A stretch of 64,000 nt of DNA. It comes from Bispira polyomma (Eukaryota). The position numbers and the translations under genes are program-made. Location: NCBI GenBank assembly GCA_965649765.1, contig OZ287752.1, positions 54,560,001 through 54,624,000 of the forward strand, in the 5' to 3' direction. The first letter of the stretch is position 1; every line of letters begins with the position of its first letter. Positions 1 to 64,000 of this stretch are shown in pieces. The notes below the pieces were generated by a model. It was not told where the DNA came from. It ran no database searches and worked only from the letters and a program-made list of their open reading frames with translations.

Positions 1-149
1 ATGTAATTGAGGAATGGTAACATTTTTAAATGTGATTGATAGATTTATCTAACACATTTTTACAATATGTTTGGATACAATATATGTTAAATGATAATGA
101 GAAACAATTGATAGATTGCATTGCTTGTCATACAACATCACGTACATAC

Positions 150-220
150 GAATGTAGGCTGAGGTAAAATTCTCCAAATAGCTCTGCGAATCCATCCGAA
201 GTATTCAATAATGAGTCTAC
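150..220 (-). other. Candidate 71-bp exon (also 23122-23192 and 46425-46495)
   Basis: Acceptor gcttttaacag|G and donor TTC|GTATGT. Two frames are open and CpGs are retained in a CpG-poor context. Confidence 0.35.
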
Positions 221-1967
221 CTGTTAAAAGCACTGACACACTGTTCTAGTGTATGCCACTGTCAAGGTCATACATCTATCACATATTGTGGAATATAACG
301 CACTAATGATCCTCTAACTGTTGAACTGTCTTAGTCCAAAGTCACAGAAACCACTAAGGTCATGGCCACCAGGAAGATACAGAATAGAGTCAGGATGTAA
401 CTGGTAAAAACCAGTTTACATCAAACTCAGAGTTCAAAACTGAGAGAAGTGAACCCTCCTGGTGGCTATTCTATTGTCTCAGTCACTTATTGTGTACTTA
501 TGCGCCATTATTGATATCAGCTATATCTTCAAATGGACAGCATAAAGCTCAGGGTATATAAGGTAACACGTAAAGCTATATATGTTACAGCGAATTACAT
601 TCAGTCAGTGATTTCGCAAAATCCCTGATACATAATGTACTTTTTACACTTATTGAATGGATTTTAGGGAATTTGTGAAAGACACTAATTTTACTTTCTA
701 GTTAGGAAAATACATTAGAATCCAAAGTGAGCGAATTAATAATAAAGTCATAAATTATTGTGGGGTAATATGTTTTTAATCATTTTGTGAGTTCAGGAGC
801 ATCTGGTTCTGTAGAATACATATGAAACTTTCTGGGAAAAGACATACTTTAAAATAAAGACTAAATATAAAATTCAACCAGAATATTTGAACATACAGTG
901 AGCATTTGCATGTATTCATTAAAAACTTAAAACTCTACATGTGTACATACATTTTAAATAATCCATCATAATGTAAGAAACCTCTGAGGAGGTTGAGCTA
1001 GATGTCTTCTAGTGAATTACCGACAGAAAAGGATGTTGAATGTGGACTTCTTTATATTATATCCTAAAAATATGTTGTTTATGGGTGCATTATTACTCAG
1101 GGGACAGTTTTATATCAATTTTCCACAATTTTAAGTTACTTTACCATTGGAGCATATGACTACATAAGCATTGCTGGTCATCATAAGACTAATTGTATTA
1201 TCACATCTTGGCCAAGGCTATTCATCCCCAATGGTGGCATTACCAGGCACACTAGTGCCACTCAAACGCCAGCCAAGCTTCTAGGCCACTCTGCCACACT
1301 TCATGTAGTTTTGTGATAGACATGGTTATACTTTTTGTATTTTGCTTTTGTACTGTGAATTTATATGTACACATTGTGAAGAATTTGATGAAAAAGAAAA
1401 AAACAAATAAATTCTATTTCAGCCTCTAAAATATATCTAACTATGTATAAACAGAACTATGGCAAGTACGCGATGGAGTTATGAATAGCTATTTCCATTC
1501 ACAGAATTAGGCAAAATAAGAAAAAATATTGAGTTTTTTAGTTTTTTGTCTGCGAGTCAATATAGGTTTACTGGTACAGTTCACAAACTAAATTGGCCAG
1601 ACAATATATTCCATTATGCACTGGGAGTTGTAAAAGTGTTTAACAATAAACTTCTGGTATGGGATTATTATCTTATTCATTGAATTTTTAGCATGGGTAT
1701 TGTAGTAACTTATATAGGTTGTAGAGAATCAAATATTATATCTTCGGGAAGACAAATAACTACATTTCTAATAGTTTCATAAAATCAACATATATCATAT
1801 ATTAGCTAAGAACATTTTACACACTAAAAACTGATAGAGATATAATACCAAATTTTCAAATAATTAAGCATTTTAAAGTGTCTGATTAAATGGTGCAGAC
1901 ATATGCGAATTGCACGGTTATATTATCATTTAATAAATGTACTGCTGTCTAAAAATCTTTCACTTAC

Positions 1968-2157
1968 TTTAATCAGTTGCTGTTTGTTTTTTGTTACAGT
2001 AACATGGCGCAAAGTTTAGTAATGTGTCAAATTGGACAATTCTGAATCTGTGAGTATACTCCTTCAGATACAGACAAACTGTAAACCAGCTCCTCCAATC
2101 ATCCTTGTCCTAAGCTACCATGACTCTCAGAAGCAGTAAGGAAACAAGAGACCACCT
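1968..2157 (-). other. Candidate spliced non-coding or 3'UTR exon
   Basis: Acceptor tacttctacag|G and donor AAA|GTAAGT on the minus strand. All three frames are closed. Confidence 0.35.
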
Positions 2158-2176
2158 GTAGAAGTATTATTTTTAT

Positions 2177-2430
2177 GGGCCGTGGTGGCCTAGTGGTTAG
2201 CAAGCATTGCACTTCACAATCACTGGTCTCTCACCTCTGGGCGGCGTGAGTTCAACTCCCGTCGATGCCTATGTGGGAAAGGTGGTAGTTCCTTACTGTG
2301 GGCCCCTGGTTTAAGTGCAGAACCTTGACCAACTGTATGCAGTGTTTCCTCCAGCGTTTCCAACTACCCGTCCCAATATAACCTACTAGAAGGTACTAGA
2401 GTGAACGTTAAATATCTAAATTCAAATTTA
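2177..2430 (+). mobile_element. tRNA-derived SINE, family A, full length
   Basis: A box TGGCCTAGTGG (2186-2196), B box GTTCAACTCCC (2250-2260), AAATTCAAATTT tail. Possible TSD TATTTTTAT at 2168-2176 and 2438-2446. A second family member lies at 18095. Confidence 0.85.
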
Positions 2431-3406
2431 AGAGACATATTTTTATCAGAACCATTTATACAGTCCTATAAAGTGACAATGGTCGCCATAGGTAGGCAAT
2501 TGATGTTATTCGATGGTATAACCTGTATTACATTGCTGGAGGATAGAACCTGGGACTTTCTGATCACATTGCCCAACTCTATATCCACAAGGCTATGGGA
2601 GACCTGCGACTAAACCATAATATCAACATATATATCCTGGTATATCTTTGACATATATTTTTTGTATATATTTAAATTCAAGAAAGAGTTCTGTTTAAAA
2701 GTATTGTGACATTCTTGGCCATTTAGATAAATATTGAAAACCATTCCGTGGTAATTGAGGTTAAGCATAAATGTGAGTTTAAAACCTTTCCAAAATATGG
2801 CCTCTGATAACTTTGACCCACTATATCCAAAATACAAAACTGGTTGTTTCAAGTAAAGGTCCAAATGTTCATAAAGTAATGTGAATGATAAAATTTACTC
2901 TACATTGATAAAATTACTGTTGTGTGGCCTATGTGTATATACATGATTAGAATGAAATTATATTAGCAAGCTAATATATCATTTATTGTAAAATGCGCTT
3001 TTATTGGAAAAAATTATTATATGCATATATACTAGTTATATTATATAGACATTTCAATGATATCTACTAAAATATAGCACAGAAATGCAACAATAAATAG
3101 TATTGGGATGATAAGGTCAAAATTAAAGGTCAAAAAGACTCAAACCGAGGTCAAAGTATGAAAACTGCCGCAAATGGTGTGATCAGGGAATAACAACAGG
3201 TAATCATTACAGTGTGGTTAGAAAGTATATAGCTCAATATAACACTAACACGTGCACGCTTCGACTTCTTTCCTTACGACTTTGCTATATCCATGGACTT
3301 AATAATTACATCAATGATTCTGCTGTTACGCTTTAGAAGATGCCTAGCATCAATAAAGAGTGTTAAAAATTCATAATAATAGTAATAATCAGAACTAAAA
3401 CAGAAT

Positions 3407-3464
3407 TTTATTCAAGATATTTGGAGCATTATACGATTTTATTACATACATTCGGGAATTTATT
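3407..3464 (-). terminator. Candidate polyadenylation signals for the ORF transcript
   Basis: Three minus-strand AATAAA (plus-strand TTTATT at 3407, 3438, 3459), 280-330 bp after the stop. The AT-rich background makes chance occurrence possible. Confidence 0.35.
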
Positions 3465-3740
3465 TAGGAAAGTGATATCCTTCTTCAATGATACAAGTAG
3501 ACTATTCAGGTATAGAAAGGTCCTTTTAGTGTACTTGTATATATCTACAAATATCTTCAAAACACAACATGCAATAAAACAAATCCAATCTACAGAGAAT
3601 TACTACTCGTATCACATCGAAGGTTATTTAAGAAACATCCAATTAATTAATTGTGACTTATTGTGCTACTTGATAAAAAATAAAAATAAATATTGATTGG
3701 TTTGATGGGTTGAATGTTTGTGACCCAGACACCTTACGGT

Positions 3741-4340
3741 TTAGGACACATTGTACTGTATCCTGTCGAAATTGTCTGTCATGAACCTATTCAAGGGAGG
3801 CTCCAGTGAGTTAATGATCTCCTGAAAGCAAATTTCTGCAGCAACCATATAGCCCTGCAACTTCAACTGTTCACGGATGTAGTAATCAATGGCCAGACAT
3901 GTAAACACAAAAGAACTAATCAAAAATAGCCACATCAAGCGAAATGTTGATTCCTCTGCTGATTTTTTCTGTGACACCACATCCATGCACTGGTTCGCCT
4001 GGATAGAGAATTCCAATTCCAGGATGTTGCCCCAATCCAGCTTGCATGTGTACAGCTCTTCCGCCTTCCCATGGTGTAACACCCAGATTTTAAACAGTCT
4101 TCTGATAAGCATCCACAGCCACCCAAATAGGTTGTTGTCACCTCGGCTGTTCCATTCATGTTCGGTCCCACAGGTTAGGCCATATACAAACTTGCCAAGT
4201 ATTGTCAACACTCGTCGTTGAAGTATGATTTCACAAGCACGATCGGGTGTATCCTGACTAAATGCATAGTACGAAATCATGCAACCAATTACCACTGCTA
4301 AATACCTGAACAGTAGAAGTTGTTTTCTAGTAAATGTCAT
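3741..4340 (-). CDS. Orphan 199-aa predicted membrane protein (N-terminal signal/anchor, 4-Cys loop, second TM), copy 1
   Basis: By far the longest ORF in an AT-rich unit. ATG at 4340 in AAGATGA context (the track starts two codons earlier at GTG). Hydrophobic segments LLLFRYLAVVIGCMISYYAF and LMWLFLISSFVFTCLAI. CpGs retained, TGACG cluster upstream, three minus-strand AATAAA about 300 bp downstream. No family recognised. Confidence 0.7.
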   Translation of the reverse strand: MTFTRKQLLLFRYLAVVIGCMISYYAFSQDTPDRACEIILQRRVLTILGKFVYGLTCGTEHEWNSRGDNNLFGWLWMLIRRLFKIWVLHHGKAEELYTCKLDWGNILELEFSIQANQCMDVVSQKKSAEESTFRLMWLFLISSFVFTCLAIDYYIREQLKLQGYMVAAEICFQEIINSLEPPLNRFMTDNFDRIQYNVS

Positions 4341-4404
4341 CTTCACTTGTGCTACTATGATAATTAAGCAAAACTGACACGTATCTATGTAAAATGGTTT
4401 TTGT

Positions 4405-4471
4405 CGTCATAAGTTTGCAATCATGACGTACACAACGTCACACCATGACGTATGTATCCATTGTGACGTCA
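4405..4471 (-). promoter_or_regulatory. Cluster of CRE/ATF-like sites, putative promoter of the 199-aa ORF (also at ~27214-27280 and ~50517-50584)
   Basis: Five TGACG cores in 67 bp: CGTCA 4405, TGACGTA 4424, ACGTCA 4435, TGACGTA 4446 and a perfect TGACGTCA at 4464-4471. They lie 65-130 bp upstream of the ATG. Confidence 0.5.
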
Positions 4472-4794
4472 TTTATGCCTTCTCGTTTATTCTCACATGT
4501 GAGGACAATTATAAGTACATTTGACTATGTATGACTCCATCTGTTGCAGAATTATTCTATGATTAGTAGCAGCATTCAGAATTTTCACCAAGTAGTATGT
4601 CGTTGTTGTTTTATATTTCAAATATGAACTAGAATCTAGTTTAAGATATTCTAAACATAGAACATATAAAGACGTTTGAACAAAAACAGAACAGGCGATT
4701 CAGCTAGAAGATGACGTATGTGTTTGTAGTTTGTCCCTTAATATTTAGGAAAGAAATATTGATCACATAAATACATCTAGTTAAGGGATAATGT

Positions 4795-4911
4795 TGGTGA
4801 GTTAGTCAGGTACTTGCCATAGGTGAGTGGTTTCTTCCGCTATTGAATCTGGCTTTCGTGATATGAGCTAAGCTGTTAAAAGCGACGTAAAACGCAACTA
4901 AATTCAAATTC
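4795..4911 (+). mobile_element. 3' fragment of SINE family B (present in each unit)
   Basis: CAGGTACTTGC...TTTCTTCC...AATCTGGC...GATAT...AAGCGACGTAAAA...AACTAAATTCAAAT matches the 3' half of 17641-17848. Confidence 0.65.
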
Positions 4912-5882
4912 TTATATGTCACTATAATAAATAAAAAATAGTAAAAAATATAATGCAAAATTGCTTTCCACAGAAATAACCATGTTTTGTTATGTTTTCT
5001 TTTTCTGAGTCTAGCCAACTTCCAGTTCCTTTAATCAATGGAATGGAAACTGTCAAAAGTTTAATTCAGGGAAATTGCAGGTTTTCTTAGTGAAAAGTTC
5101 CAACAGTAGAAAATTTAATCTATGGTTTTAGAATGATTACTAAAAATAATTATATGTTTCTCATTAATGGTGTTTATGGATACTTTCAAAGATATTTTGC
5201 CATTTAGCCCATTTTATAATGCATTCTGTCAGTGTACAAAAAGTAGACCCATTGGTCTGATTGGGTATACTGTTAGTGCATTTTATTGTACTCAGATCAA
5301 AGCCTGGGAAATTCCTAGCTAGTTGTTTTTTGGGATATAATCCACTACAAAACCATATAATCATGACCCCCCCCCCCAGCCCCCAACCCCCCTCTGTCAG
5401 AGAGTAATAAATTAAACTACTTAACCAACCACAAGAAAGGCATTAAGTGAATCCTCATAGGTAACATTATGTATCATTGTGGTGTTCTTTTAATTGTGGT
5501 TTAATCTTTCCATCTATCCAAGCTGTTAATGTACAATGGTAGTATGTAGTACATAGGGTGTATCCAGAGGGTGTCGAGGGTCCAGGCCCCAGAGCCGGGC
5601 TCCGGGTCCAGGAATACCTATCTAGGGGGCAAGGCCCCAGATACAGGGGATGGTCCAGGGGCTGACCAAACATGAATAAAACAGTCAAATTTCAACAATT
5701 ATGTTAACAATATACTCTAAGAGTGAACCTAAGACCTAGATCCGATACATGGTGTATTTTAGCATATTAACTGTACCCAAGTGTATATTAAAGTTTAAAT
5801 CATCCTCTTTAGAGGTATAGTCCGTTACCAAATATACCAAATAGGGGGTAACTCAGCATTGGTAAAATAATGTATTCTCAGT

Positions 5883-6022
5883 ATTTGAATTTAGTTAGGT
5901 TTTAGTGTCACCTTAAAAAGTTTCGAGTTTATATCAAGATGGTCAGACTTAATGATGGAAGAAACCAGTGCTAAAGCACTTTAAACCACCAGCTTATGGC
6001 AAGTACAAACTTTCCCACATGT
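5883..6022 (-). mobile_element. Diverged SINE 3' fragment on the minus strand (present in each unit)
   Basis: Reverse complement reads ATGTGGGAAAGTTTGTACTTGCCATA...GGTTTCTTCCATCATTAAGTCTGACCATCTTGATATAA...AACTAAATTCAAAT. Confidence 0.6.
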
Positions 6023-7679
6023 TTCTTTGTCAAATGTAATAGGTACACTATTGTACATGGAAAATAACCATTCTGTCACATACTTATTATTAAAAAATTG
6101 CATTTTGTATGTGTAAAACAACAGCTTAAATCTATATAGTTTGGTGTTTTCTTTTCTGAAAATGGAAGAAACAATTGTGTTTTATCTCCAAATATCACAA
6201 ACCTCCTTTCTCCTATCAGACTATTCTTTTGCTCATTGTTTGGAATATGCGCCACAGAGGATGCCTGGTCATCAATTGTGGAACTATAGAAGTCAACACA
6301 TTAACATTAAAACATATCTTTCTTTTTGATATTTTGTCCTCAGTTTTTGCCCTTAACTATATGTGTACTCTGATAATCCCATGAGTGTAAAAAAGGCTAA
6401 TATTGGTACATTGTTTTGTTTTACAATTTTAAGCTCCATTGTCAGGCTATCATATTATATAAGTACATTTGTAATACCTACTCATAATTCCTGTCAGAAG
6501 GAATCTAGGCCATGCATTCATTGGGGATTACCCCACTATCTAACTATATGCATTACATATCATTGACGCCCCAAAAAGGCATCAATTGCCTGAACAATTT
6601 TCTTTAAGTGAGTGTAATAGGATTACCTTACTTTTACACTTGTATGTATTTATGCGGTGGTGCTTTCTAGCTTGTATTATAACAATATGTCCGATAATGC
6701 CATGTACAAAAATAAAATTCTCTTTTTTTACATTGACCGTATACCAACTTTCAAAATTTCACTATAATTTTTCCCTCATTCTATGATGCATTTTTTCCAG
6801 TTTATCCATTCAATATGGCTGTTACAATTGTTACTTTCAGAGTTTGGTGTTAAATCCTGGGAGGGATTTGTACATATAGCAAAATTATTTTCATTTCTTT
6901 TTTTATTAAAACAAAAATCATCTCTTTCTACACGATTTGATATGTTAAGATATTAATGTAATCTTTTAATGCAATACAGGTTATATGGCTTATTTAACGA
7001 TAACAGAACATCCATGACGAGGTGACCAAACATGGTTAAATAACAGAAGTCTGCTGGTGTATCCTACAAATATGAAACATTACTTGGCTATTCCTGATCT
7101 CACGAGAGGTCATTTCTGGGGAGGGGGGGGGGACAATTTCGAAGTTAATTAATTTATTTTAAATAATGCTTTTATATATTACTGTTCAAACATATTTAAC
7201 TTAAAAAATAAGTCTGATATGGGAAGAATTTTAAGCAGTACATGTGAGTTTATTTTTGCCTGCAAAATGAGACATTTGTGAGGTGGGTCAATTAACTTCA
7301 GATCACCTGCCCTATCTTTAAAGCCGCCATGCATATGTAGTAATGAAAAAGGTGCTTTCTGTTCATTCTGTTTTTTTAAATAAATGCACATGTAAAAATG
7401 AATCACACAATAAATTGAAATTGCAAGGCACAGCAATCAACAACAAAAAGTAAATATTAAGTCAACCACAGACATAGGAAGTTTATTTGGCACCTGCTAG
7501 TCTCTGATTTGCTTTTTATTTCTGGTTACCAGTCACGTGATTAGTAAATAGAATAGTATTTGTGAAGGTCAAACATACGAAGAAAAAAAAGGTCTAGCAG
7601 AAATGAAAGAGAAAAGTATCTATTTAACCCAAATATTGATAATATTTATTTGTGCTTAAGAACATATTTATTTTCTGAA

Positions 7680-7930
7680 TTTCTCTCCCAGGTCACCATT
7701 CATATTTCTCTTTCTATAAAACGTAAACCTGAGTAGACTTTGATTTATTTGTCCTACAAAGTTCTGTATACAAGTCCAGATTACTCCATCAAGTGTTTGA
7801 CAACCACATACACACAACCACTGTAGGTCCCTAGCACTTCCTTGCACTCATTTGTCTTCACAAACTGGTGAGATCTGACCATGGACAACATTCCTCAGTC
7901 GTCGAGTGGATTATTTACGCAACTTTTATC
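7680..7930 (-). mobile_element. Possible highly degenerate Tc1 transposase N-terminal (HTH) remnant, present in each unit
   Basis: PLDD*GMLSMVRSHQFVKTNECKEVL...KHLME*SGL loosely resembles the Tc1 pattern TPRDDRxIxRxVxxxxFxTAxEI...RRLxESGL. Confidence 0.3.
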
Positions 7931-9888
7931 TGAGCTCTCTAACTTCTGAGCACTTTACCAGTTACTAGCTACTAAAAAACTACTATATATCGAATCTACA
8001 GTTTTATTTTATATCAATCAATCTCTTTCTGGTACAATTCTGTAACAGAGTAGTATGCAAAAACAGCTTTACAATTTCTATATTTCTATCTTAACATCAC
8101 ACATTTGGTAATATTAGTTTTCAATTTTTATAAACACGTATTTCATGTTTTACATTTATGAGCATTTGACGATAATGATATTTTAGAACATACATTCAAA
8201 AGGTAAAAGTGTATTTTACATGCACAAGCAAAATTCAAACAAAAATATAATATTTAATGGCCAAAAATGTTGATCAAAAGTGTTTTCGTGGTACTATTAA
8301 GTTCTAAATCTATTTTAAACATCACTAATATTTGCCACAAAAAAACATAGATTTGAAAGAACACTGAAGATAAACATGTACTTTAACAAACATAAATATT
8401 TCATGTGTATTAATTAAATATTAGTCAAATATATATATTTTTTAAAATTTTGAAGCTAAGTAAAGGAAAAGAGAGTCCAGATTTGATAAAATTGCCCTAC
8501 TTTTTGACTGATGAACTTGCTTATCAGTTATTACTCATTCAATATCACCTAACATTTCACAACACACACAAGACCCCCCTTTCAGTACACAACCGTGAGA
8601 GCCACTTAGTAATTCCACCCACCAAGTGAACTGACATTTAATTACCATATAACTTCATAATATTTGGTAGAGAAGCTGAGGTTTTGAATGACAGCTGTAA
8701 TGAAAGCATTGAGCTAGGCTTTCACCATTATACAAAAGCTTGAGAAACCTATTTGTCCCAGGTTTATATAGGTTTACATCAACATCATGCTTCTTGTTCA
8801 TCAACTTTCAGCAAAATATGCAATCTTTTGGCATTTCCTGTTACATTGCCAAAAAACACCTTCTCTTTCAAAAATATGGAAGTTACAAAGTCAAAATACA
8901 AACATACGCAAAGCTTTACCCAAACATACATTGCTGCATATCAAACGTATAGTGGTTTTTAGCAAATGATGAATGATTAAATTTTGCACAAAATGTGTAT
9001 GACCAAAGCTTCCGATATTTGTTAGGGTGTTCTCTACTTGAAAATAGAGTGGCGTTATCCGGTTCCCAAACCTCACCTACTTAGATTACATCCTTATTGT
9101 ACAGTTATACTTATACATATATAGTTGTGTCTAAAATGCCATTAATTCTAAGATCCTTTTTAAGATTATTGGAAAATAGTAGACACATATTTCAATCGGA
9201 AAGTGCCAGGTTTAATTTAATTATTGTAAGACTACTTGGGGTTTATACAAATTCATTACGGAACATAACACCATAGCAATATTTTATATGTTTACATATA
9301 TCATAGACATACGCACAAATATACCATATAATATAGACAATGTGTCGAAAAACATGGATGGTTACTACTGATTGTTCAACATGTTTGGTGCTTTTAAAAA
9401 AAACTGTATGTTTTAAAACGTTATCACCATGTGAGTCATAAATCTTCAATATAACCTTACTATTAGTCTTGCTGAACAACAAAAGATTGTTTCAAACATT
9501 ATAGCTTTGTTTTACTATATTTCAGAGTTATAATTCATACCACAAGACTCAGTTACTGCTATGGTAGTCATGATGATAATACTGACATACAAGTTAAGAG
9601 AAGTAAGTCAACTATAACACCTTAGGTAAATGTAAACTATATCTACTAAAACACTTGTCGTCCAGCACAGAATGAATGACAACAATAACTATTTATAATA
9701 TGTCTGTGAAGTTCACTGGTATCTGTACATTATCTGAGATCTTGACATATAAAAACCATTCTTATTTCTGTAGACAAGTTTCATTTTTCACATTAGACCA
9801 AATGTGCCGCTACATGTATTATTTACAATTATGCTTGTTGCCTACTTCTAGTTAAATCTGTATAGAATCATTGCAGTCCACGTGCACC

Positions 9889-10088
9889 GCCCTCCAAAAT
9901 GGACGCTATTCGCCCCCCCCTCCCCCCAAATGACCTACTTATAAAACAGCCCATTGGTTGAAAATATCCCCTGCCTCCCGTTCTTTTAGATGAATGATTT
10001 CATAGTCCTGTCCCTCCAGCATGGCCGCCATTTGTTTATTTCCCCTACTTATATAACAGCCCATAGGTTGAAAATATCGTCTGCCTCC
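9889..10088. repeat. Duplicated module containing YY1-, TATA- and CCAAT-like motifs
   Basis: 9934-9978 matches 10044-10088 at 41 of 45 positions. Each is preceded by CCCTCCA..ATGG.CGC.ATT. Confidence 0.75.
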
Positions 10089-10881
10089 TTTTTTCCAGGC
10101 CGGCAGCTTTCTCAGTCTCTTCCTGTTCCCTATGGACCACTATCTCCACACTTTCTCTGGGTGACAGGTACCTGAGATTGACCACATCTACTGGACAGTT
10201 CAGACTGTCTAGCCTGGCATGTAAACTAGCCTTTCTGGTCTCGGGATTGGGTTGTTTCAAATCCATTCTGCACTTTTTGTTGTACATATTACTATCACCT
10301 TTAAGAAGAGATAAAACAGCTTTTTCTGTTAACAATATTGTTATAAATTCACAACCACACTGAACAAATATTTTTATACTATACACTTGCAACAGTATTT
10401 TGCACAAGTTAAATTTTCTTGTAGTTTAATTATATTTTTACGAACAATCCCTGAAACGTTTGTTCTCTAGCATTAAACAAATGTTGTTTTTTTTTATCAC
10501 AATTGTTTGTTTAAATAGCTATCTATCTAACTTCTATTTAGTTTATTCTTAAATAAGCTACCAACACCACACGATGTTCGAACATAGACACTCTGATTTA
10601 CTCAGAGCATTGTGCATTGATGGAGCATAATATATATGAAACTGATGGCATTGATGGACACAAGAGTAAGTAATGAGAGTTGAGTAAGACATTCAGCCTT
10701 CTTCACAAAACAAAAGCATGACTGGATGTGTTCATCAAATTACTGATTTATCTGGACCACATTTCTGCTTCCTTTCAAAGACCTCTGGGTATAAATTGAC
10801 CTTAGCATAATTTTTACTTTTCCTGGTTGAGCATTGCAAACTTGGACAGATTCCCTATAATGAATATGGGAGTACTATTTA

Positions 10882-10886
<5 letters not shown>

Positions 10887-10933
<47 letters not shown>
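10887..10933. repeat. (TA)23 microsatellite
   Basis: Direct read. (TA)18 at 33721-33757 and (TA)15 at 56766-56796. Confidence 0.95.
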
Positions 10934-10935
<2 letters not shown>

Positions 10936-11346
10936 GGTATTCTTCTCGCTGGGGTCATCCGGGTGGTTAGATAGGCTAGGCTAATATTCTCAAAAAAAAT
11001 TGTGAGGCAGAGGAAATTCACATTCGATACAAAAGCCAAGGTGACACTTACGTCTAGCAATAAGTAATTCAGTAAAGTGGTATGTTCGCTTAACCATGAT
11101 CAACATTACAACCTTACTGAAAAATAATGGGCGTTATAATCCTCTTGGTGAGCATTCTGAATATCTATTTTTTTTTTTCAAAATGACTGTCAAGTTGTAG
11201 AAATTGGTTTAGTGTTGGTATTAATAGAAACATCATTTCATTAAAAAAAGGGATTATAATTCACACAAATTAAGGCAATTTTTGATACTAAATAAATAAT
11301 AATTGTAATGATAGTTGTCACCTGATATAGTTATGAACAACACTGT

Positions 11347-11612
11347 TATTTAATGTGCTATGACATTATTACCCCACCCTGGGTTCTTCTACTTGTCAAA
11401 TAATAGTTCACTCTCAGCTCCCTTAGGGAGAATACTGGCCATGCCGCCACACATACAGAGCACAAACACCACTTTAGTGGCCAGGTACCCATTTATACAC
11501 GTGGGTAGAGAGGGACAACTTCGTGCATATTCCAAGGATAACCAGGCCAGCAGCGAGCATCGAATCTCGACCTTCACATCCAAAGTACACTCTAACCAAT
11601 AGGCCACAGAGT
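11347..11612 (-). mobile_element. tRNA-derived SINE with CORE-like central domain
   Basis: Minus strand: A box TGGCCTATTGG, B-box-like GATTCGATGCT, then CCCTCTCTACCCACGTGTATAAATGGGTACC, which resembles the conserved central domain of invertebrate SINEs. Confidence 0.7.
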
Positions 11613-11616
11613 GGTT

Positions 11617-12728: not shown

Positions 12729-12801
12729 TCTCCTATGGTCTACTGGTTAGGAATTTGGTCTGATGAGCAAAAGGTCCCCAGTTTGACACCTAGTTGGCGG
12801 A
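12729..12801 (+). pseudogene. tRNA-like relic or isolated SINE head (present in each unit)
   Basis: TGGTCTACTGGTTAGGA is A-box-like and GTTTGACACC is a degenerate B box at tRNA-like spacing. The stems do not pair fully. Confidence 0.4.
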
Positions 12802-53400: not shown

Positions 53401-56400
53401 GTGGGTCAATTAACTTCAGATCACCTGCCCTATCTTTAAAGCCGCCATGCATATGTAGTAATGAAAAAGGTGCTTTCTGTTCATTCTGTTTTTTTAAATA
53501 AATGCACATGTAAAAATGAATCACACAATAAATTGAAATTGCAAGGCACAGCAATCAACAACAAAAAGTAAATATTAAGTCAACCACAGACATAGGAAGT
53601 TTATTTGGCACCTGCTAGTCTCTGATTTGCTTTTTATTTCTGGTTACCAGTCACGTGATTAGTAAATAGAATAGTATTTGTGAAGGTCAAACATACGAAG
53701 AAAAAAAAGGTCTAGCAGAAATGAAAGAGAAAAGTATCTATTTAACCCAAATATTGATAATATTTATTTGTGCTTAAGAACATATTTATTTTCTGAATTT
53801 CTCTCCCAGGTCACCATTCATATTTCTCTTTCTATAAAACGTAAACCTGAGTAGACTTTGATTTATTTGTCCTACAAAGTTCTGTATACAAGTCCAGATT
53901 ACTCCATCAAGTGTTTGACAACCACATACACACAACCACTGTAGGTCCCTAGCACTTCCTTGCACTCATTTGTCTTCACAAACTGGTGAGATCTGACCAT
54001 GGACAACATTCCTCAGTCGTCGAGTGGATTATTTACGCAACTTTTATCTGAGCTCTCTAACTTCTGAGCACTTTACCAGTTACTAGCTACTAAAAAACTA
54101 CTATATATCGAATCTACAGTTTTATTTTATATCAATCAATCTCTTTCTGGTACAATTCTGTAACAGAGTAGTATGCAAAAACAGCTTTACAATTTCTATA
54201 TTTCTATCTTAACATCACACATTTGGTAATATTAGTTTTCAATTTTTATAAACACGTATTTCATGTTTTACATTTATGAGCATTTGACGATAATGATATT
54301 TTAGAACATACATTCAAAAGGTAAAAGTGTATTTTACATGCACAAGCAAAATTCAAACAAAAATATAATATTTAATGGCCAAAAATGTTGATCAAAAGTG
54401 TTTTCGTGGTACTATTAAGTTCTAAATCTATTTTAAACATCACTAATATTTGCCACAAAAAAACATAGATTTGAAAGAACACTGAAGATAAACATGTACT
54501 TTAACAAACATAAATATTTCATGTGTATTAATTAAATATTAGTCAAATATATATATTTTTTAAAATTTTGAAGCTAAGTAAAGGAAAACAGAGTCCAGAT
54601 TTGATAAAATTGCCCTACTTTTTGACTGATGAACTTGCTTATCAGTTATTACTCATTCAATATCACCTAACATTTCACAACACACACAAGACCCCCCTTT
54701 CAGTACACAACCGTGAGAGCCACTTAGTAATTCCACCCACCAAGTGAACTGACATTTAATTACCATATAACTTCATAATATTTGGTAGAGAAGCTGAGGT
54801 TTTGAATGACAGCTGTAATGAAAGCATTGAGCTAGGCTTTCACCATTATACAAAAGCTTGAGAAACCTATTTGTCCCAGGTTTATATAGGTTTACATCAA
54901 CATCATGCTTCTTGTTCATCAACTTTCAGCAAAATATGCAATCTTTTGGCATTTCCTGTTACATTGCCAAAAAACACCTTCTCTTTCAAAAATATGGAAG
55001 TTACAAAGTCAAAATACAAACATACGCAAAGCTTTACCCAAACATACATTGCTGCATATCAAACGTATAGTGGTTTTTAGCAAATGATGAATGATTAAAT
55101 TTTGCACAAAATGTGTATGACCAAAGCTTCCGATATTTGTTAGGGTGTTCTCTACTTGAAAATAGAGTGGCGTTATCCGGTTCCCAAACCTCACCTACTT
55201 AGATTACATCCTTATTGTACAGTTATACTTATACATATATAGTTGTGTCTAAAATGCCATTAATTCTAAGATCCTTTTTAAGATTATTGGAAAATAGTAG
55301 ACACATATTTCAATCGGAAAGTGCCAGGTTTAATTTAATTATTGTAAGACTACTTGGGGTTTATACAAATTCATTACGGAACATAACACCATAGCAATAT
55401 TTTATATGTTTACATATATCATAGACATACGCACAAATATACCATATAATATAGACAATGTGTCGAAAAACATGGATGGTTACTACTGATTGTTCAACAT
55501 GTTTGGTGCTTTTAAAAAAAACTGTATGTTTTAAAACGTTATCACCATGTGAGTCATAAATCTTCAATATAACCTTACTATTAGTCTTGCTGAACAACAA
55601 AAGATTGTTTCAAACATTATAGCTTTGTTTTACTATATTTCAGAGTTATAATTCATACCACAAGACTCAGTTACTGCTATGGTAGTCATGATGATAATAC
55701 TGACATACAAGTTAAGAGAAGTAAGTCAACTATAACACCTTAGGTAAATGTAAACTATATCTACTAAAACACTTGTCGTCCAGCACAGAATGAATGACAA
55801 CAATAACTATTTATAATATGTCTGTGAAGTTCACTGGTATCTGTACATTATCTGAGATCTTGACATATAAAAACCATTCTTATTTCTGTAGACAAGTTTC
55901 ATTTTTCACATTAGACCAAATGTGCCGCTACATGTATTATTTACAATTATGCTTGTTGCCTACTTCTAGTTAAATCTGTATAGAATCATTGCAGTCCACG
56001 TGCACCGCCCTCCAAAATGGACGCTATTCGCCCCCCCCTCCCCCCAAATGACCTACTTATAAAACAGCCCATTGGTTGAAAATATCCCCTGCCTCCCGTT
56101 CTTTTAGATGAATGATTTCATAGTCCTGTCCCTCCAGCATGGCCGCCATTTGTTTATTTCCCCTACTTATATAACAGCCCATAGGTTGAAAATATCGTCT
56201 GCCTCCTTTTTTCCAGGCCGGCAGCTTTCTCAGTCTCTTCCTGTTCCCTATGGACCACTATCTCCACACTTTCTCTGGGTGACAGGTACCTGAGATTGAC
56301 CACATCTACTGGACAGTTCAGACTGTCTAGCCTGGCATGTAAACTAGCCTTTCTGGTCTCGGGATTGGGTTGTTTCAAATCCATTCTGCACTTTTTGTTG

Positions 56401-56760
56401 TACATATTACTATCACCTTTAAGAAGAGATAAAACAGCTTTTTCTGTTAACAATATTGTTATAAATTCACAACCACACTGAACAAATATTTTTATACTAT
56501 ACACTTGCAACAGTATTTTGCACAAGTTAAATTTTCTTGTAGTTTAATTATATTTTTACGAACAATCCCTGAAACGTTTGTTCTCTAGCATTAAACAAAT
56601 GTTGTTTTTTTTTATCACAATTGTTTGTTTAAATAGCTATCTATCTAACTTCTATTTAGTTTATTCTTAAATAAGCTACCTTAGCATAATTTTTACTTTT
56701 CCTGGTTGAGCATTGCAAACTTGGACAGATTCCCTATAGTGAATATGGGAGTACTATTTA

Positions 56761-56765
<5 letters not shown>

Positions 56766-56796
<31 letters not shown>
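56766..56796. repeat. (TA)15 microsatellite
   Basis: Direct read. Confidence 0.95.
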
Positions 56797-56798
<2 letters not shown>

Positions 56799-57209
56799 GG
56801 TATTCTTCTCGCTGGGGTCATCCGGGTGGTTAGATAGGCTAGGCTAATATTCTCAAAAAAAATTGTGAGGCAGAGGAAATTCACATTCGATACAAAAGCC
56901 AAGGTGACACTTACGTCTAGCAATAAGTAATTCAGTAAAGTGGTATGTTCGCTTAACCATGATCAACATTACAACCTTACTGAAAAATAATGGGCGTTAT
57001 AATCCTCTTGGTGAGCATTCTGAATATCTATTTTTTTTTTTCAAAATGACTGTCAAGTTGTAGAAATTGGTTTAGTGTTGGTATTAATAGAAACATCATT
57101 TCATTAAAAAAAGGGATTATAATTCACACAAATTAAGGCAATTTTTGATACTAAATAAATAATAATTGTAATGATAGTTGTCACCTGATATAGTTATGAA
57201 CAACACTGT

Positions 57210-57475
57210 TATTTAATGTGCTATGACATTATTACCCCACCCTGGGTTCTTCTACTTGTCAAATAATAGTTCACTCTCAGCTCCCTTAGGGAGAATACTG
57301 GCCATGCCGCCACACATACAGAGCACAAACACCACTTTAGTGGCCAGGTACCCATTTATACACGTGGATAGAGAGGGACAACTTCGTGCATATTCCAAGG
57401 ATAACCAGGCCAGCAGCGAGCATCGAATCTCGACCTTCACATCCAAAGTACACTCTAACCAATAGGCCACAGAGT
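57210..57475 (-). mobile_element. CORE-like SINE, unit 3
   Basis: Paralog of 11347-11612. Confidence 0.7.
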
Positions 57476-57479
57476 GGTT

Positions 57480-58063
57480 ATAATAATAATAACAGTAAAT
57501 ATATTATATAGCGTTCAACTGGTACATAAGAAAAATAAATAAAAAAATTCTGTGTTCTCTGGCGCTTGTCTTCTGAAATAAATGAGCTTTTAGCTGTTTG
57601 CTGAATAGGTTGTGGCTGTCTGTTTTTCTGAGGTAGTCTGGATGAGAGTTCTGTGAGTTTGACCCAAATACAGTAAAACTACAGTCAGCAAGTGTCGGAA
57701 CATCCAATAGATAGTAGTGTTTTTTTTCATCTAACAGGATAGTCGCAGTTTTTTTTTATTGAATTCGATTCTGTTAATATCTCGGTGCTTTCTGGTGAAT
57801 ACATTTATGGACTGTTGTCAAAATTGAAACAAAATTCTGTAGCGAATTGGAAGCTAGTGGAGTGTCTTTAGTGCTCTTGAACTACTAGTGTTATTTGTCT
57901 TATTTTAGCACATGCTTTGCTGCTGCATTTGGCAATTTTTGCATCATTTTAGTCTATTTCTCAGGCAAGGCCATAAAGATATCATTGCAGTAGTCCAGAT
58001 GGAATAGAACAAGGCCATACACTACTTGTTTGCATTCTTTTGCATTTGCATTTAAACAATTTA
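57480..58063 (-). mobile_element. L2/CR1 LINE remnant, unit 3
   Basis: Paralog of 11617-12200. Confidence 0.85.
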
Positions 58064-61000
58064 AGTTGTTAATACAAAAAAATGTGTCAGAGGCACTAAC
58101 AGTGGCATACTTACAATATAAACTATTTTGTGAATATCAATTAATGCTGCACACACTAATAGTGATATTCCATTAATTCCCATTGAACGAAAATATCCGG
58201 CAAAACATCACCCCCATCTTGTATATAAGGATTATCAATTGGGCCAAGAAGAACCATCCATCATTAGATTAGAGTCTTTATCAACGAAAAGCAGGATTTT
58301 TTGTCTCCTTTTTTGTTTTGTTTTATTACACCCCACAGCAGCTGCAAAACGTTATACACCCCACGATGACTCTCTGAAGAGACAAGGAGAATCAACAAAA
58401 AAATGATTTTATTGTTTCTAAGCAGCATTGAACCCTACCAATACACACAGGTGTTTCCCTTCCACCAATTTATCACACTTCCCCATAGACATCTAGCCTT
58501 CACTAAGGCTCAGAATGTGCCAGAAGGCCACATATAGAGATAGCTATTTTGTATAAGAGACCTAATGGCTTTAACATTCGCTTATGGGTGGTCTCCTATG
58601 GTCTACTGGTTAGGAATTTGGTCTGATGAGCAAAAGGTCCCCAGTTTGACACCTAGTTGGCGGAGTTGGTCTGTTGAACAGGATATACTGCCAAAGTTGC
58701 AATGTCCATTTGGGATAACATTCGCTTGCAAGATATGAACACGTCATTGTTTACTGATGATGTTGACCAAGGCTATGCTGTAGGATTATGCATTCTGTAG
58801 AATCAGCATCATAGAGGGTGATATCTCAATAGGATGTGATATAAATGTTCAATAATACTAAACTAAACATGAACCCAGGGAACCATTTAAAATGATGATC
58901 CTCTGTCACTTGGGTCTCATTCCCAGTGGCAGGCTTATAAGGACCTTGTGGACATTGATTAATGGTGTCATCTTCAAGTTGCAGTCTTCAGGTAGGTTCA
59001 CAACTTTGCAAGAACTAGAATTTAAACGCATCAATTGCAACATTAATTGGCAAAACTCTTTAATTTTGCCAGATATATTACTTTGGGGGTAAATAGACTT
59101 TGACTGAATGGCATTTGAAATAGGTCGTTCTAGTTTGTAAATACAACACACTGTGTATATGTAATTCTGCAGTACAGTCACAGCCAACAACCAAAAGATG
59201 AGGCCATTGCATTATTAGAATAGGGAGCATGGTTGTGACCAAACGAAGATAATGGAACAGTCTGTCTCCCAGTACATAAATACACCTAAACCAATTAATA
59301 ATTTAAATTGACCTACCCACTAAAAATGATGGTACAATAATAGCATACATTGTGTACAGCATTATGGAGTGGATGGCATTTTGGGTTTTCAACATCTTAA
59401 ATGAATGCCAAGCAGCTTCATTGTAATGATGTTAATGGTTCTTGGGGCGCTGCTGACAACCTGTGATGCCTGATAAAAATTATTGGTATTTGTATTCACA
59501 GTTACAGTCCGTGCAGTATCGGTCATTATCTGCCAACCTGACGATTTAGATGAGGTAATAAAAATTTGGCCCAAAGGTCAAACAGGTTTTTTGGTGTAGA
59601 AGCAGTTTTGACCTGTCTGTTATTAATGTTTTAATTCTGTTTGGTTTAGTACTAACATAGATTGATGTATATTCTTTTTCTTACTGTCATTAAATTGGTA
59701 CGCTTGGGTGTACTGGCATTACTGCTTGCTACACCCCTGTAATAAAAGAGATCTCAGTTTTATCAGCCGAACAATATCGATTTTAAGAGCTGATAATGTC
59801 ATTATCAGCTGTGAATGATAAATATGCACAACTAAGGAGCCTGTATTGACATGATAATCTGTTAGTAGCGCCCTGCTTACTGGTATCATAGTATTTATTA
59901 TACACCTACTAATATTGTATATACCATAATGAGTGATAATATTGAAAACCTCAATTTATATATATTAACACAAAATTGTCAAAAAGACATTGTCAAAGTA
60001 TCTTGTACAAGTGTGGGAAAAGCGTAAGGAAATTTGATCTAAACAGTTGTTTCAAGGTTGATTTAGAATTGGTTACATACATGTATAACAAAGGATTTAT
60101 GAGTATATAATATGACCAGTAAAAAATGTATATGTGTTTAAAGTGACATATAAGCCCAAAAATTGTATTTTTTTTTAATTACATGTCACTATAATAAAAA
60201 TATATATCTATCTGCATCACTTAATGCAAATCTAATGCACCTACCAATGCCCTAAGGCCCCAAAAAAATGAAAATAAAATTCTTGGATCTGCCTGGATCA
60301 CCCAACGAAGTGTCATGTTTGCTGTAAACAAACGGTAAAAACAAATCCTTATTGGCTGATGTACTAAAGATATAACACATTCTGTCACCTGGCTTTTAAA
60401 AACAACTTAAAATGACCGACTACACGACACAACAAATATGTATATATAGCCTGCTCCCGACACGACATTACACAGCAATTAAACTTGGAGAAATCTCTTC
60501 AAAACTGCTGTGTTGTTGTTTATATCGTACAGTATCCATATGATGTTTATATATACAGCTGTTGTTAATATGTATTTTATATGGATTATGTAGTGGTGTT
60601 TCATGTAAACAGTACTGTTGTGCCTTGACGTGTCGTCCCCTGTAGTGTAGTACAGTGCCTTGGTTTCTAAACCCCTGTTTCTGCATAGTTGAAAGCGATG
60701 TAAAAAACCAAAATTCTGACTGAGATCTTTTGCTTATCCCTGTGTTTTAGCCCAACGATAGTTCCCATAAGCAATATATTGCGCATACAAATACTGTTCT
60801 TGAAAATTCAATAATCAAATACAGCAGATCTAAAGGCTCATAACTCAGTCAAGGCACCAACGGGACAAGAACATTTGTTGTTTTATGTAATCCTAAGGTA
60901 AAGATCGAAAGAACAGAGACAAAACATCACCTCTTTGTCAGTTTAATATCCAATGTTTTTTAGTCTCTAACAGACTCTAAGAACTGGTATAACTTATGGT

Positions 61001-61422
61001 TTTTATGTAACAGATAATTTCACCTTCTGAACATCAAAGTGCCCTGAGCAAAGTTGCTGTGACTAACCTATCTGTGAACATTTAAAGGAATCGTGATCAG
61101 TAGAAACAGAGAGGAAGTTCTATCATTTATTGAATTACATTAGGCTTTTTTTTTTTTTTGGTGAATGCCAAAATTACAAGTTGTACTGCCTAAAACGCCT
61201 TTGAATCTTTACCTTTTCATCTTTTTTGTGAGAACTGTAAATAATTAGCTTGAACAATAAACCTAAAATAATAAAGTATTAGGTAGCCTTACGTGCACTG
61301 TTTCAACAACAGCACCTCTTATATATTAACTAAGAATATGAAGACCATGAAAGAAAACATATTAGGAAATACTAATATTTATACTAAGTTAAAAGCTACA
61401 CCTATATACACACTGAACAGTA

Positions 61423-61692
61423 GGGCCACCTTTAACAATTTAAGTTCAGTCACTTAAGGTGACTTTAAATTACCTTAGGTTACTAACTTTGTGGTGACCT
61501 TAAACCGAGGTCACCTTAGCACAAGTTAAGGTTTGATTCACTTTGTGTTGAATGTATAAAAGTATGTGGTCATCTGTGGTGACCTTATACTAAATTAAAG
61601 TATTGTTAACTTACCAACTTTTTAGATAAAGTTAACTTTAAATACATGAAGTTAAGTCTAAATATAGATTTACTGCTCTATTGAGGTGGCCC
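61423..61692. mobile_element. MITE, unit 3
   Basis: Paralog of 15560-15829. Confidence 0.7.
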
Positions 61693-63496
61693 TAAATATA
61701 TAACTTTGAGAAATTGTAAAAATATAGATATATGTAAAGAAAAGAAAGAGCCCCCTTATGACCAGATGTGTTAGCTAATGGCTAAAACTTAACTCAAACT
61801 AGCAATAATTCTTCAGTCCATGCTACAGCATCACTTAGCTCACTAGAACCTTACATGACTGCGACAGCCCGTTGTTACATCAATCATCATGGCCAAACTA
61901 TATTATGCAAACATATATTTTTCTCTTGACTGGCTGTAGTAATCCATGTTTGCCTTGCGTGCTTTTGGCTGCTTTGAGTATTATTGGATCACTTGTTGGA
62001 GCCAGGGTGTGTGAAACTACAAACTACCTGTGAAATATAGTTTACAATGTTTAAACAAAACGCCAAATTAGAACGCAATATGCAAAATTGTTACACTTTG
62101 ATTCAAACTAAACCACTCTTTGTCAAATTACACCATCCCCCAAATTGCAACCTATTGTACCAAATTACTTCATATCCTTGTACCATATTATGACACCACT
62201 TACCAAATTAAAATACAATGTGCCAAACTAAAACACATTTAAAATTTGAACGATGATGATAGCTTATGTATCCGTTATGTAGACAGGTGCAGGTCGACAC
62301 CATGGAGACGCTGGGAAGCTGACCCATGGAATGGTGGAAAAGCCTTGCTAAACAGACAGGTATTGGACTTTTGTATGAAACAGGGCAGAGAAGCAGAGTG
62401 ATTCCACACGTTAAGAAGCATCATAAGCAAAAGTATGCTTGAAATGTGTTATTTATTTATGAACTGATGGATTATAAATTTAAAAATTGGACCTAATTTG
62501 CCTGGTATTGTGTAAACGTGTATGAGGAGAAAGGTGTGGGCCAAAAATGCTGCAGTTAGAAACTTGTAAATTAAATGACTGTTTTAAAGATTGAACATTA
62601 TCTGCCAAATTAAAACACTTGTTTACACTGGAACATGGACACACACACTGTTCTATTCTATAATTTTTTTCTGTGAAGGTCATACACCTGCCATATATTG
62701 CCTGATATTCCTGGTGCACTATCATAGTCCAGAGCCAAGGCAATATTTTAAGAAAAAATACTGTAGTACTTCAGGCAAGTATGGTTAAATAAATGTTTGG
62801 TGAAATAAAAACTTCTTTTACTTTACAAAAACGTAAGATATGTGAACTAATTTCAAGAGGAACTGAATTCCAAAGCAGCCATGTTACGTGACAAAATGAA
62901 TTCCACACCTGTTCTAGTCAAACTTGGAGATATTTGACACAGACTAAATGATGATACATATTAGAGTATAATGAGAGGGATATGTCATAGGTTCTTAAGA
63001 GCTCTTCATAATCAAATGTATTTGCTTTTTCCAATAATACCCCCCCCCCCCTCCTGCATTTACTAAGGCGTCTAAGTCACTGTTTTTTCCTGAACCAAAA
63101 TGAAAGTAAATCCCAAAGACAAACAGTAAGCAAGAAAAGCAAAGAATTAGAGTGACACCAAAGAGGGCTTGTAAACTGAAACCCTCCTCACAAAGAGAAG
63201 TTTACTGTAAGACCTTGTATTATTGTCACCCTGAGAAACTGTAACTCTGCACAGTGTAATTGTACTTCTCTTTGGGTAAATGGAAAATAATACTGTAAAA
63301 TTAAAGACTGAGCATGTCTACCTTATGGTAAAGTAAAGAGTGGGCTTCCGATGATATAATAGATGATCATCAAAAGGAAAGCCATTCTTCAATTATCAAT
63401 AGTGTACAGGGCCTTTATTTTTATTTTAATGATTTCTGTTTGAGCAATTTTTTCTTAAATTTCACATTCATGGGGTTCATGGGCTTCATGGTTCAT

Positions 63497-63704
63497 GGTG
63501 GTGGACTAGTGGTTAAATGTGTTAACTTTACAATCACTGGTCTCTCACTAAATTGGGTTCGAATCCTGCTTGTTTCTTTGGGTGGGGAAGTTTGGCAGGT
63601 ACTTGCAAACAGGTCATTGCTTGCTTCAGGTACGATTTCTTCCACCATTAAATCTGGCAGTCATGATATAACCTAAGCGACGTAAAATCAAACTAAATTT
63701 AAAT
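63497..63704 (+). mobile_element. SINE family B, unit 3
   Basis: Paralog of 17641-17848. Confidence 0.75.
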
Positions 63705-64000
63705 ACACACACTTGCCAGTAATTTAACACACTGCACACTTTCTTTTTGTAATTTTAAGGAAACACTAAACTTAATTTTACGATTACCATATATTAATAG
63801 TCTTAATGCAGGGGCATGTGTAGAAGCTTGTGTAGAAGCCAGTACGCAAAAGCATACCAATTTTATGACAGAATGAGCCCCCCCCCACCCCCACCCCACC
63901 CCCAACGAATTTATGTTAGCACAAAAAAAACAAAACATAATATTTTGATACATTAGCAAGCATTGCGCTTCACAATCACTGGTCTCTCACTTCTGGGTGA

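Follow-up and report, generated by a model that had tools for sequence, protein, structure and literature searches.

The closest described counterparts of the locus studied here are the TSPY (20.4-kb units), CT47 and GAGE arrays, in which units of tens of kilobases stand head to tail, each carries one intact gene, identity between units exceeds 99%, and growth proceeds via unequal exchange. In recognition, defence and reproductive gene families, selection keeps types apart and favours extra copies; tandem arrays also originate and persist neutrally. An array of this layout fills the window analysed here, a stretch of 64,000 nucleotides from Bispira polyomma, which holds the following units:

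1..349, plus strand: tail of array unit 5 (its last 349 bp), 99.6% identical to 22973-23321 and 46276-46624, with the junction motif at 340-359.
350..23321, plus strand: array unit 6, of class A, which it shares with units 1 and 3.
23322..46624, plus strand: array unit 7, class B, with 482 additional bases at 37187-37668, as in units 2 and 4.
46625..64000, plus strand: array unit 8, class C, truncated by the window end, with 17.4 kb in the window and the unit end 5.2 kb beyond.

Within the window, 25-mer self-matches are most frequent at offsets of 23303, 22809 and 23039, and self-BLAST returns colinear blocks of 7-19 kb, 99.2-99.8% identical and on the plus strand throughout. On C5, the chromosome piece that holds the window, the array consists of 8 head-to-tail units of 22.5-23.3 kb each (~183.5 kb in total, 99.2-99.8% alike), and whole-genome probes with the C5-specific part of the unit recover exactly 8 copies. 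It extends from C5:54445704 (L019:7705) to C5:54629191 (L020:5191), a point 5.2 kb beyond the window; because these limits lie outside the window, the array runs off both window ends. The junction motif recurs at 349/350, 23321/23322 and 46624/46625, and every internal junction of the array is identical, with a microhomology of a single base. The C5 array thus combines units of several kilobases, at least three copies and identical junctions, the features by which a head-to-tail amplicon is recognized. The original prediction of near-identical ~23-kb units running head to tail off both window ends, and of a young amplicon array in which each unit carries one gene, is borne out by these identities and by a gene frame that is open in 8 of 8 units; the array ends and the true junction to which it pointed are both located on C5.

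Along the array, the unit variants follow the order A B A B C A B C, from which it follows that the most recent growth step copied a three-unit block. At about 56680, unit 8 lacks 236 bp, a deletion with 3 bases of microhomology that unit 5 shares. It is very improbable that the array is an assembly artefact in which the assembler wrongly expanded a single- or few-copy locus: private substitutions and indels distinguish the units in the same consistent order, even though units 3 and 6 differ over 6.3 kb by a single gap and 0 mismatches and none of the listed public (Logan) contigs bridges a junction. In k-mer depths from Logan contigs (3 runs, 2 samples, 1 study), the C5-specific part reaches about a quarter of the depth of the segment shared with other chromosome pieces in two samples (111 versus 465 and 94 versus 372), as expected for ~8 versus ~37 copies. 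This depth ratio fits 8 versus ~37 copies and not 1 versus 37, with the absolute copy number itself taken from the assembly; absolute values derived from contig depths are inconsistent between runs. The public contigs have a loose end at 27599, which is the site of a 285-bp deletion in unit 7.

Each unit is a composite of two halves, and the part shared with other copies carries this deletion:

350..10933, plus strand: fragment of a dispersed gene-bearing segment, with equivalents at 23322-33757 (unit 7) and 46625-56796 (unit 8).
10934..23321, plus strand: C5-specific half of the unit, present only in the eight C5 units, short interspersed repeats excepted.
4790..4791, no strand: 285-bp deletion site, ~450 bp upstream of the ATG, also at 27599/27600 and 50903/50904.

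The deletion is private to the C5 copies, the 285 bp being kept in every other copy and in the old paralog L013. The interspersed repeats of the C5-specific half comprise ~180 and ~480 bp near 11600-12180, ~245 bp at 18095-18340 and ~200 bp near 22700-22940. Directly to the right of the array lie decayed copies (65-88%) of unit coordinates 16900-23321, which indicates that the locus had repeated earlier. This earlier repetition, together with the existence of other young arrays in the genome, is what a neutral account would lead one to expect, in which the array is a structural by-product of a duplication-prone region, the gene is a passenger, and its diversity reflects old paralogs and ectopic gene conversion. 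We consider this account unlikely overall and return to it where the gene and its other copies bear on it.

The gene in question encodes a protein of 199 amino acids and is present in the window three times:

3741..4340, minus strand: coding sequence of the 199-residue protein in unit 6, stop codon included.
26550..27149, minus strand: the same coding sequence in unit 7, differing from unit 6 by M77I and K125E.
49853..50452, minus strand: the same coding sequence in unit 8, differing from unit 6 by T46A and V198M.

These four differences within the array are all non-synonymous, a bias without statistical significance (p about 0.4). The gene is intronless, and its reading frame is by far the longest of the unit, spanning 221 codons between stop codons against a background of 34% G+C; the coding sequence itself has 43% G+C versus 33% in its flanks. 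None of the eight C5 copies has a stop in the 221-codon frame, so that each unit carries an intact gene. Across 37 close copies the frame is open in 36, and across the 64 family loci in 47; two of the family loci have open frames of 641-648 aa. When the observed substitutions are placed at random, the frame stays open in just 1.3-3% of trials. On the strength of this conservation, together with the distant relatives and the upstream motif cluster described below, we take the 199-residue frame to be a real gene and the sole credible one of the unit. That it would be the only credible coding cargo had been proposed before, and the 20 other open reading frames of the unit lack a Pfam match. The accompanying claim that no rDNA, histone, snRNA or transposase gene lies behind the array also holds, as Rfam finds nothing in 1-24000 and Pfam nothing in 22 open reading frames of the unit.

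The predicted protein begins with a hydrophobic segment, followed by an ectodomain of ~105 residues with four conserved cysteines (36, 57, 99 and 118) and a Trp-rich amphipathic helix; its C-terminal part is predicted to contain a second membrane segment and then a variable 43-residue tail. The protein has no usable match in Pfam, PHROGs, the ESM Atlas (features and shape), a PDB profile search or Foldseek against the PDB. AlphaFold models are poor (pLDDT 45 and 61, pTM <0.3), so fold matches obtained with them are meaningless. A word-index search with the single protein gave no match, and a literature search found nothing relevant. A profile search of 1.84 billion proteins recovered 7 relatives with matching Cys/Trp/Gly motifs, and a word-index search with the family alignment added one more, its matches being unnamed ENA proteins only. 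The original prediction had called the gene an orphan; this does not hold, given about 64 family loci in the Bispira polyomma genome and these 8 distant relatives, all in one other public assembly. The family thus appears to be one of undescribed small membrane proteins, without a name, Pfam model or fold match.

Upstream of the coding sequence lies a compact cluster of binding motifs:

4424..4472, minus strand: candidate promoter in which 48 bp contain five TGACGT half-sites, with counterparts at 27233-27281 and 50536-50585.

The cluster contains the palindrome TGACGTCA (CRE) and a conserved core ATGACGTCACAATGG at 4458-4472, and lies upstream of the ATG at a distance of 85-130 bp. Five TGACGT sites are observed in these 48 bp versus 0.008 expected. 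It is kept in all paralogs, including old ones of 77-81% identity, and recurs in three foreign homologs as TGACGTCACA at positions -52 to -122; a TGACGTCA near the gene start is conserved in the family. CRE sites are typical targets of CREB/ATF-type bZIP factors, and the arrangement resembles that of familiar CREB/ATF/CREM-target promoters in having TGACGTCA and several half-sites within ~130 bp of the start codon, here family-wide; unlike in those promoters, the role of the CRE in the 199-residue gene is a prediction from sequence. For the extended core ATGACGTCACAATGG, the cognate factor may be one other than CREB/ATF/CREM.

The surroundings of the gene had been read as old transposon debris that predates the array, and this view has to be replaced: 350-10933 is part of a young multi-copy segment, 96-99% identical between copies and found on at least 12 chromosome pieces. 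Copies on C1, C2, C3, C7 and C8 share it up to an (AT)24 run at 10886-10933, and those on C4, C6, C10, C12, C13 and C14 share it as far as 7682. The segment measures at least 12.7 kb and exists in about 20 long copies, whose flank trees are star-like with nearly equal divergence (1.4-2.3%). Identity of this order indicates that it has spread to these chromosome pieces recently. Six copies have one nested LTR-element insertion in common, which is absent from C5; the block therefore moved as DNA after that insertion.

A burst of this kind could suggest that the segment, at least 12.7 kb long, represents a large element of mobile or selfish nature, with the protein as its cargo or as a selfish gene (a driver or toxin-antidote), and the C5 array as a side effect. 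The number and dispersal of the copies, their star-like trees, the right end at the (AT)n run common to the C1, C2, C3, C5, C7 and C8 copies, and the movement of the block with its nested insertion would all accord with such an element. We nevertheless regard it as improbable, because neither the unit nor the covered 12.7 kb of the segment contains a transposase, reverse transcriptase, integrase or Rep/helicase open reading frame, the only element-like frame belonging to the nested LTR element that C5 lacks, and because terminal repeats and target duplications were not seen in the sequence covered, beyond which the left end lies. Neither a Helitron-like nor a LINE-like end was seen at the (AT)n run. 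Harbinger genes lie near two foreign homologs, and these two elements are just 65% alike and look coincidental; the genome holds thousands of Harbinger elements, and of the 150 best transposase matches none falls within about 490 kb of a copy, so that the proximity is probably due to chance and transport as Harbinger cargo is rejected.

The segment has been amplified in tandem on separate occasions. On C1, tandem units of 5.1 and 6.7 kb share a junction that joins -199 to 6410 and differs from the C5 junction; C2 has additional partial repeats with 5.4-kb spacing, and larger periods of 18-87 kb occur on C3, C2 and C1. The array first described as an amplicon is therefore real on C5 and is not the sole one, the C1 amplification having its own, different junction. 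For the neutral account, in which the gene would be a passenger of one duplication-prone region, this re-amplification of the same gene with a different junction on C1, along with the arrays or repeats on C2 and C3, is a difficulty.

A second difficulty for that account comes from comparing the copies with one another, which fall into gene types separated by a sharply bounded block of differences:

3707..4433, no strand: island of divergence between gene types, with 5-19 differences per 100 bp versus 0-5 in the flanks.

The edges of the island match those of the coding sequence to about 35-90 bp, and its densest block, 3755-3860, codes for the C-terminal tail. Between types, the coding sequence diverges by 6-14% versus 1.4-2.3% in the 5-6 kb of flank compared. 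For types II and III, coding divergence is 0.057-0.144 versus 0.014-0.019 in the flanks, an excess of 3.1- to 7.9-fold (Fisher p 3e-7 to 5e-34). In the tail (residues 157-199), dN is 0.29-0.34 and dS 0.04-0.11, for an omega of 3-6.8 that is based on few synonymous sites (25-28.5 non-synonymous versus 1-2.5 synonymous changes). The predicted cytoplasmic tail thus varies almost solely at amino-acid-changing sites, which points to a family that is diversifying.

In the rest of the coding sequence, omega falls to 0.5-0.65, with dS at 0.11-0.15, ~8 times the flank divergence. Because positive selection alone does not predict a raised dS, this pattern suggests old gene types whose flanks have been homogenised or copied recently. 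Coding-sequence and flank trees conflict for C12, C6 and C7a. The neutral account draws on both observations, since outside the tail coding dS is raised as much as dN and recombinants appear in the trees; it fares poorly with an island that ends so near the coding sequence, with the tail omega of 3-7, and with the type III tail, for which a search of the genome turned up no donor paralog, outside matches reaching 78-81% at best. From these comparisons, we infer that selection keeps the protein types apart and favours additional copies.

Taken together, we favour, with somewhat better than even confidence, a real and very young 8-unit amplicon that stems from one tandem duplication and belongs to a gene family that is diversifying and whose copies are favoured. 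The array would have started with a single tandem duplication joined at one shared base, its left breakpoint falling within a gene-bearing segment newly arrived on C5 and its right breakpoint in local DNA with decayed repeats already in place. Unequal exchange between units would then have enlarged it, the three-unit block copy being the final step, and the C5 array would represent the newest dosage expansion of type I. Selection for dosage, like any biological role of the protein, we infer. A more far-reaching possibility, which we think improbable at present, is that this CRE-driven family forms a recognition or selfish system in an annelid, with types kept apart, flanks homogenised, the block spreading and being re-amplified, and the tail in an arms race with an intracellular partner; candidate settings for such a race would include recognition between gametes or of self, defence against viruses, and a drive or toxin-antidote pair.

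Because young gene amplicons such as TSPY, CT47 and GAGE are already known, the C5 array on its own is modest news. It differs from them in that its host is an invertebrate, its protein family is undescribed, and its gene occurs in several separate arrays on different chromosomes. Weight is added by a protein family that has neither a name nor a Pfam model nor a match to a solved or predicted fold, by repeated amplification of the same gene, which on another chromosome involved a different junction, and by a coding sequence that forms a sharp island of divergence in near-identical flanks with strong amino-acid turnover in its tail. These features make the 199-residue gene a candidate recognition, defence or conflict gene; to our knowledge, almost none are known in the host's animal group. 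For the divergent coding sequence, the familiar counterparts are the MHC, with its intron homogenisation, and the venom PLA2 and conotoxin genes, whose exons diverge more than their introns. The present family differs from these in lacking introns, in having copies across many chromosomes, and in that variation peaks in a predicted cytoplasmic tail rather than in a ligand-binding ectodomain or a secreted toxin. It resembles them in a coding sequence 3-8 times more divergent than its 5-6 kb flank, in one protein region with dN/dS well above 1, and in its recombinant copies, and the C5 array offers, beside these systems, a clean natural setting in which to follow both the birth of an array, at a one-base junction, and its growth by block duplication.

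The window (G+C 34.5%, no N) repeats itself head to tail. Its 25-mers recur most often at offsets of 23303, 22809 and 23039, self-BLAST gives colinear plus-strand blocks of 7–19 kb at 99.2–99.8% identity, and three occurrences of a junction motif, AGTCACAGAA|ACCACTAAGG, set the unit starts at 350, 23322 and 46625. In the 1.035 Gb genome searched, where the window lies at G000:C5:54560001-54624000, probes taken from the half of the unit that is private to chromosome piece C5 detect exactly eight copies, all on C5. The array starts at C5:54445704 (L019:7705, in a numbered locus) and ends at C5:54629191 (L020:5191), for a total of ~183.5 kb; the window covers all of units 6 and 7, plus the tail of unit 5 and the first 17.4 kb of unit 8. 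These eight units and two ends confirm the original prediction of a young head-to-tail array leaving both ends of the window. The main features are as follows (unit coordinates are those of unit 6, in window numbering).

Window 3741-4340, minus strand, repeated at 26550-27149 and 49853-50452: 199-aa ORF
Unit 350-10933: gene-bearing segment shared with other chromosome pieces
Unit 10934-23321: private to C5, short interspersed repeats excepted
Units 1, 3 and 6: class A, by indel markers
Units 2, 4 and 7: class B, 482 extra bases at unit coordinate 14362
Units 5 and 8: class C, 236-bp deletion with 3-base microhomology
C5:54631148-54655960 (partly L020:5428-7624): older tandem generation at the same place, 2–3 partial copies of unit 16900-23321 at 65–88%
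L002:243-1598, minus strand, also L005, L010, L011, L012 and L028-L039: LTR element at unit 7682 in six segment copies, 256-bp LTRs ~5.9 kb apart

The native left flank, ending in ...AAAATAAAC, precedes ACCACTAAGG, and unrelated sequence follows ...AGTCACAGAAA on the right. All internal junctions fuse ...AGTCACAGAA to ACCACTAAGG, with a lone A assignable to either side. A one-base junction of this kind is the signature of end joining or replication slippage and not of recombination between repeats. The first duplication would thus have occurred by one of these two routes at that base. Because the indel markers order the units as A B A B C A B C, and units 3 and 6 are nearly identical (no mismatches and one gap over 6.3 kb), the latest growth step was the very recent copying of a three-unit block of ~69 kb. 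The decayed copies to the right of the array show that this locus had already gone through an earlier round of repetition. About 3 kb right of the array, a probable LTR retrotransposon occupies L020:8216-9998: its Gag-like ORFs, one of which weakly matches a SCAN domain and has a zinc-knuckle-like motif, lie ahead of a protease-like ORF. Within the window, a 68-bp tandem repeat spans 20991-21126 (two copies, 95% alike).

The stretch occurs in just three public runs, which are stored as contigs, come from two samples of one study and include no RNA. C5-specific contigs have k-mer depths of 111, 94 and 505 in these runs, and shared-segment contigs 465, 372 and 930–4600. The resulting ratio of ~4 in the first two runs fits 8 versus ~37 copies and not 1 versus 37. 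The depths are relative, and none of the contigs listed for the three runs bridges an array junction, so this support for copy number is partial. At window 27048, in the unit 7 coding sequence, a contig of run X3 has four inserted bases (CGAT), which means a broken frame in at least one copy or allele of that sample.

The shared segment, together with 1060 bp left of the array, matches copies on C1, C2, C3, C4, C6, C7, C8, C10, C12, C13 and C14 at 96–99%. The original prediction of a tandem amplicon with a gene stands, but its view of everything else recognisable as old transposon debris does not, as half of the unit is this dispersed segment and not local DNA. Since the non-C5 copies run leftward past the start of the C5 copy, the array junction at 350 is a breakpoint within the shared segment. 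The right end, at an (AT)n run (10886-10933), is common to the C1, C2, C3, C5, C7 and C8 copies; those on C4, C6, C10, C12, C13 and C14 break at 7682 and lack 7683 onward. Independent copies of the LTR element found at 7682 lie on C2, C6, C7, C8 and C9, and its first ORF (at least 452 aa) has no Pfam match. A 285-bp stretch is missing at 4790|4791 in the C5 copies and in no others. Unit ORFs besides the 199-aa ORF gave no Pfam match, and window 1-24000 gave no Rfam match. A ~240-bp repeat of very high copy number, probably a young element of SINE-like type, lies at window 2197-2426 and 18095-18340, with equivalents in units 7 and 8; it has many matches at 93–97% on all chromosomes and a contig k-mer depth of up to ~2 million in the public runs.

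Amplification has recurred on other pieces. On C1, gene units of 6.66 and 5.14 kb are grouped in blocks recurring at 80–87 kb, and their junction fuses -199 to 6410, so the C1 and C5 junctions, the two for which this is demonstrated, are different. C2 has partial repeats spaced 5.4 kb apart and four gene copies at 63–75 kb, and C3 has gene-copy pairs at 26.0 and 18.3 kb.

On sequence grounds, the 199-aa ORF is a real gene. Its stop-to-stop frame of 221 codons lies in AT-rich DNA, and coding G+C is 43% versus 33% alongside. Six-frame searching of the genome gives 64 family loci, 37 of them in a close subfamily (12 on C1, eight on C5, four each on C2 and C3, two on C7, and one each on C4, C6, C8, C10, C12, C13 and C14). 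An open frame is present in 36 of these 37 and survives in copies differing by 12–14%, an outcome kept in only 1.3–3% of trials placing the same substitutions at random. Profile searching of 1.84 billion proteins returns seven relatives, and a word-index search adds one more; none of the eight is named, all are 23–37% identical, and their source is a single ENA assembly (contigs of 0.4–2.7 Mb). The description of the gene as an orphan is thus not borne out. The relatives have a common layout (N-terminal hydrophobic segment, Cys36, YGLxC57, ELYxC99xLxWG, FSVxAxxC118, second membrane segment, variable tail), and where they start and end is consistent with a coding sequence free of introns. Distant family loci at C4:80107576-80107902 and C9:31274872-31275297 lie within open frames of 641 and 648 aa, a possible fusion of the family domain to something larger that could hint at function. 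A Harbinger transposase and a MADF-domain gene lie 3–9 kb from two of three homologs in another public assembly (ERZ22147071; L026:500-3947, L027:5540-7229), probably by chance, the two elements being merely 65% alike. The G000 genome yields 4074 first-look candidates for the Harbinger/PIF transposase (PF13359), and open frames of 300–490 aa are common among them, so this transposon family is very large and partly intact.

Coding sequences of the close subfamily fall into three types by divergence from the C5 copy.

Type I (C1, C2, C3, C12): 1.5–2.2%
Type II (C6, C7a): 5.7–7.0%
Type III (C4, C8, C10, C13, C14): 11.8–14.4%

C7b groups with type III in the coding-sequence tree. The flanks (5–6 kb compared) diverge from the C5 copy by 1.4–2.3% in every copy, and the coding excess over flank in types II and III has p values of 3e-7 to 5e-34. 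This island of divergence (3707-4433) comprises the coding sequence, ~35 bp past the stop and 90 bp before the ATG. Within it, the tail (residues 157-199) shows dN 0.29–0.34, dS 0.04–0.11 and omega 3–6.8; the rest of the protein shows omega 0.5–0.65 and dS 0.11–0.15, ~8x the flank value. The flank trees have a star-like shape, their inner branches measuring 0.001–0.005; inner branches of the coding tree total ~0.10, its end branches are not longer than flank ones, and C12, C6 and C7a change groups between the two. A donor for the type III tail was sought across the rest of the genome, where nothing exceeds 81% identity. The simplest reading of these comparisons is that old protein types are held apart by selection while their surroundings are homogenised or were copied lately, with positive selection acting in addition on the tail. 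A hypermutation process targeting the coding sequence could also be the source of this divergence.

Upstream of the ATG by 85–130 bp, five TGACGT sites fall within 48 bp (4424-4471; 0.008 expected). The palindrome TGACGTCA, within the core ATGACGTCACAATGG, is one of them. All close copies retain the cluster, as do old paralogs with 77–81% identity, and each of the three foreign loci read has TGACGTCACA at a position from -52 to -122. This conservation argues for a compact promoter, presumably served by a CREB/ATF-type factor, as CRE sites typically are.

The 199-aa protein has no match in Pfam, PHROG, PDB or Atlas, and its structure models are weak. From the charge pattern, either both ends are predicted to be cytosolic or the first segment to be a cleaved signal. 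Either topology would leave a cytosolic tail and an ectodomain of ~105 aa containing two disulfides. The array itself belongs to an already known kind; of more interest at this locus are the gene family and the way it has evolved.
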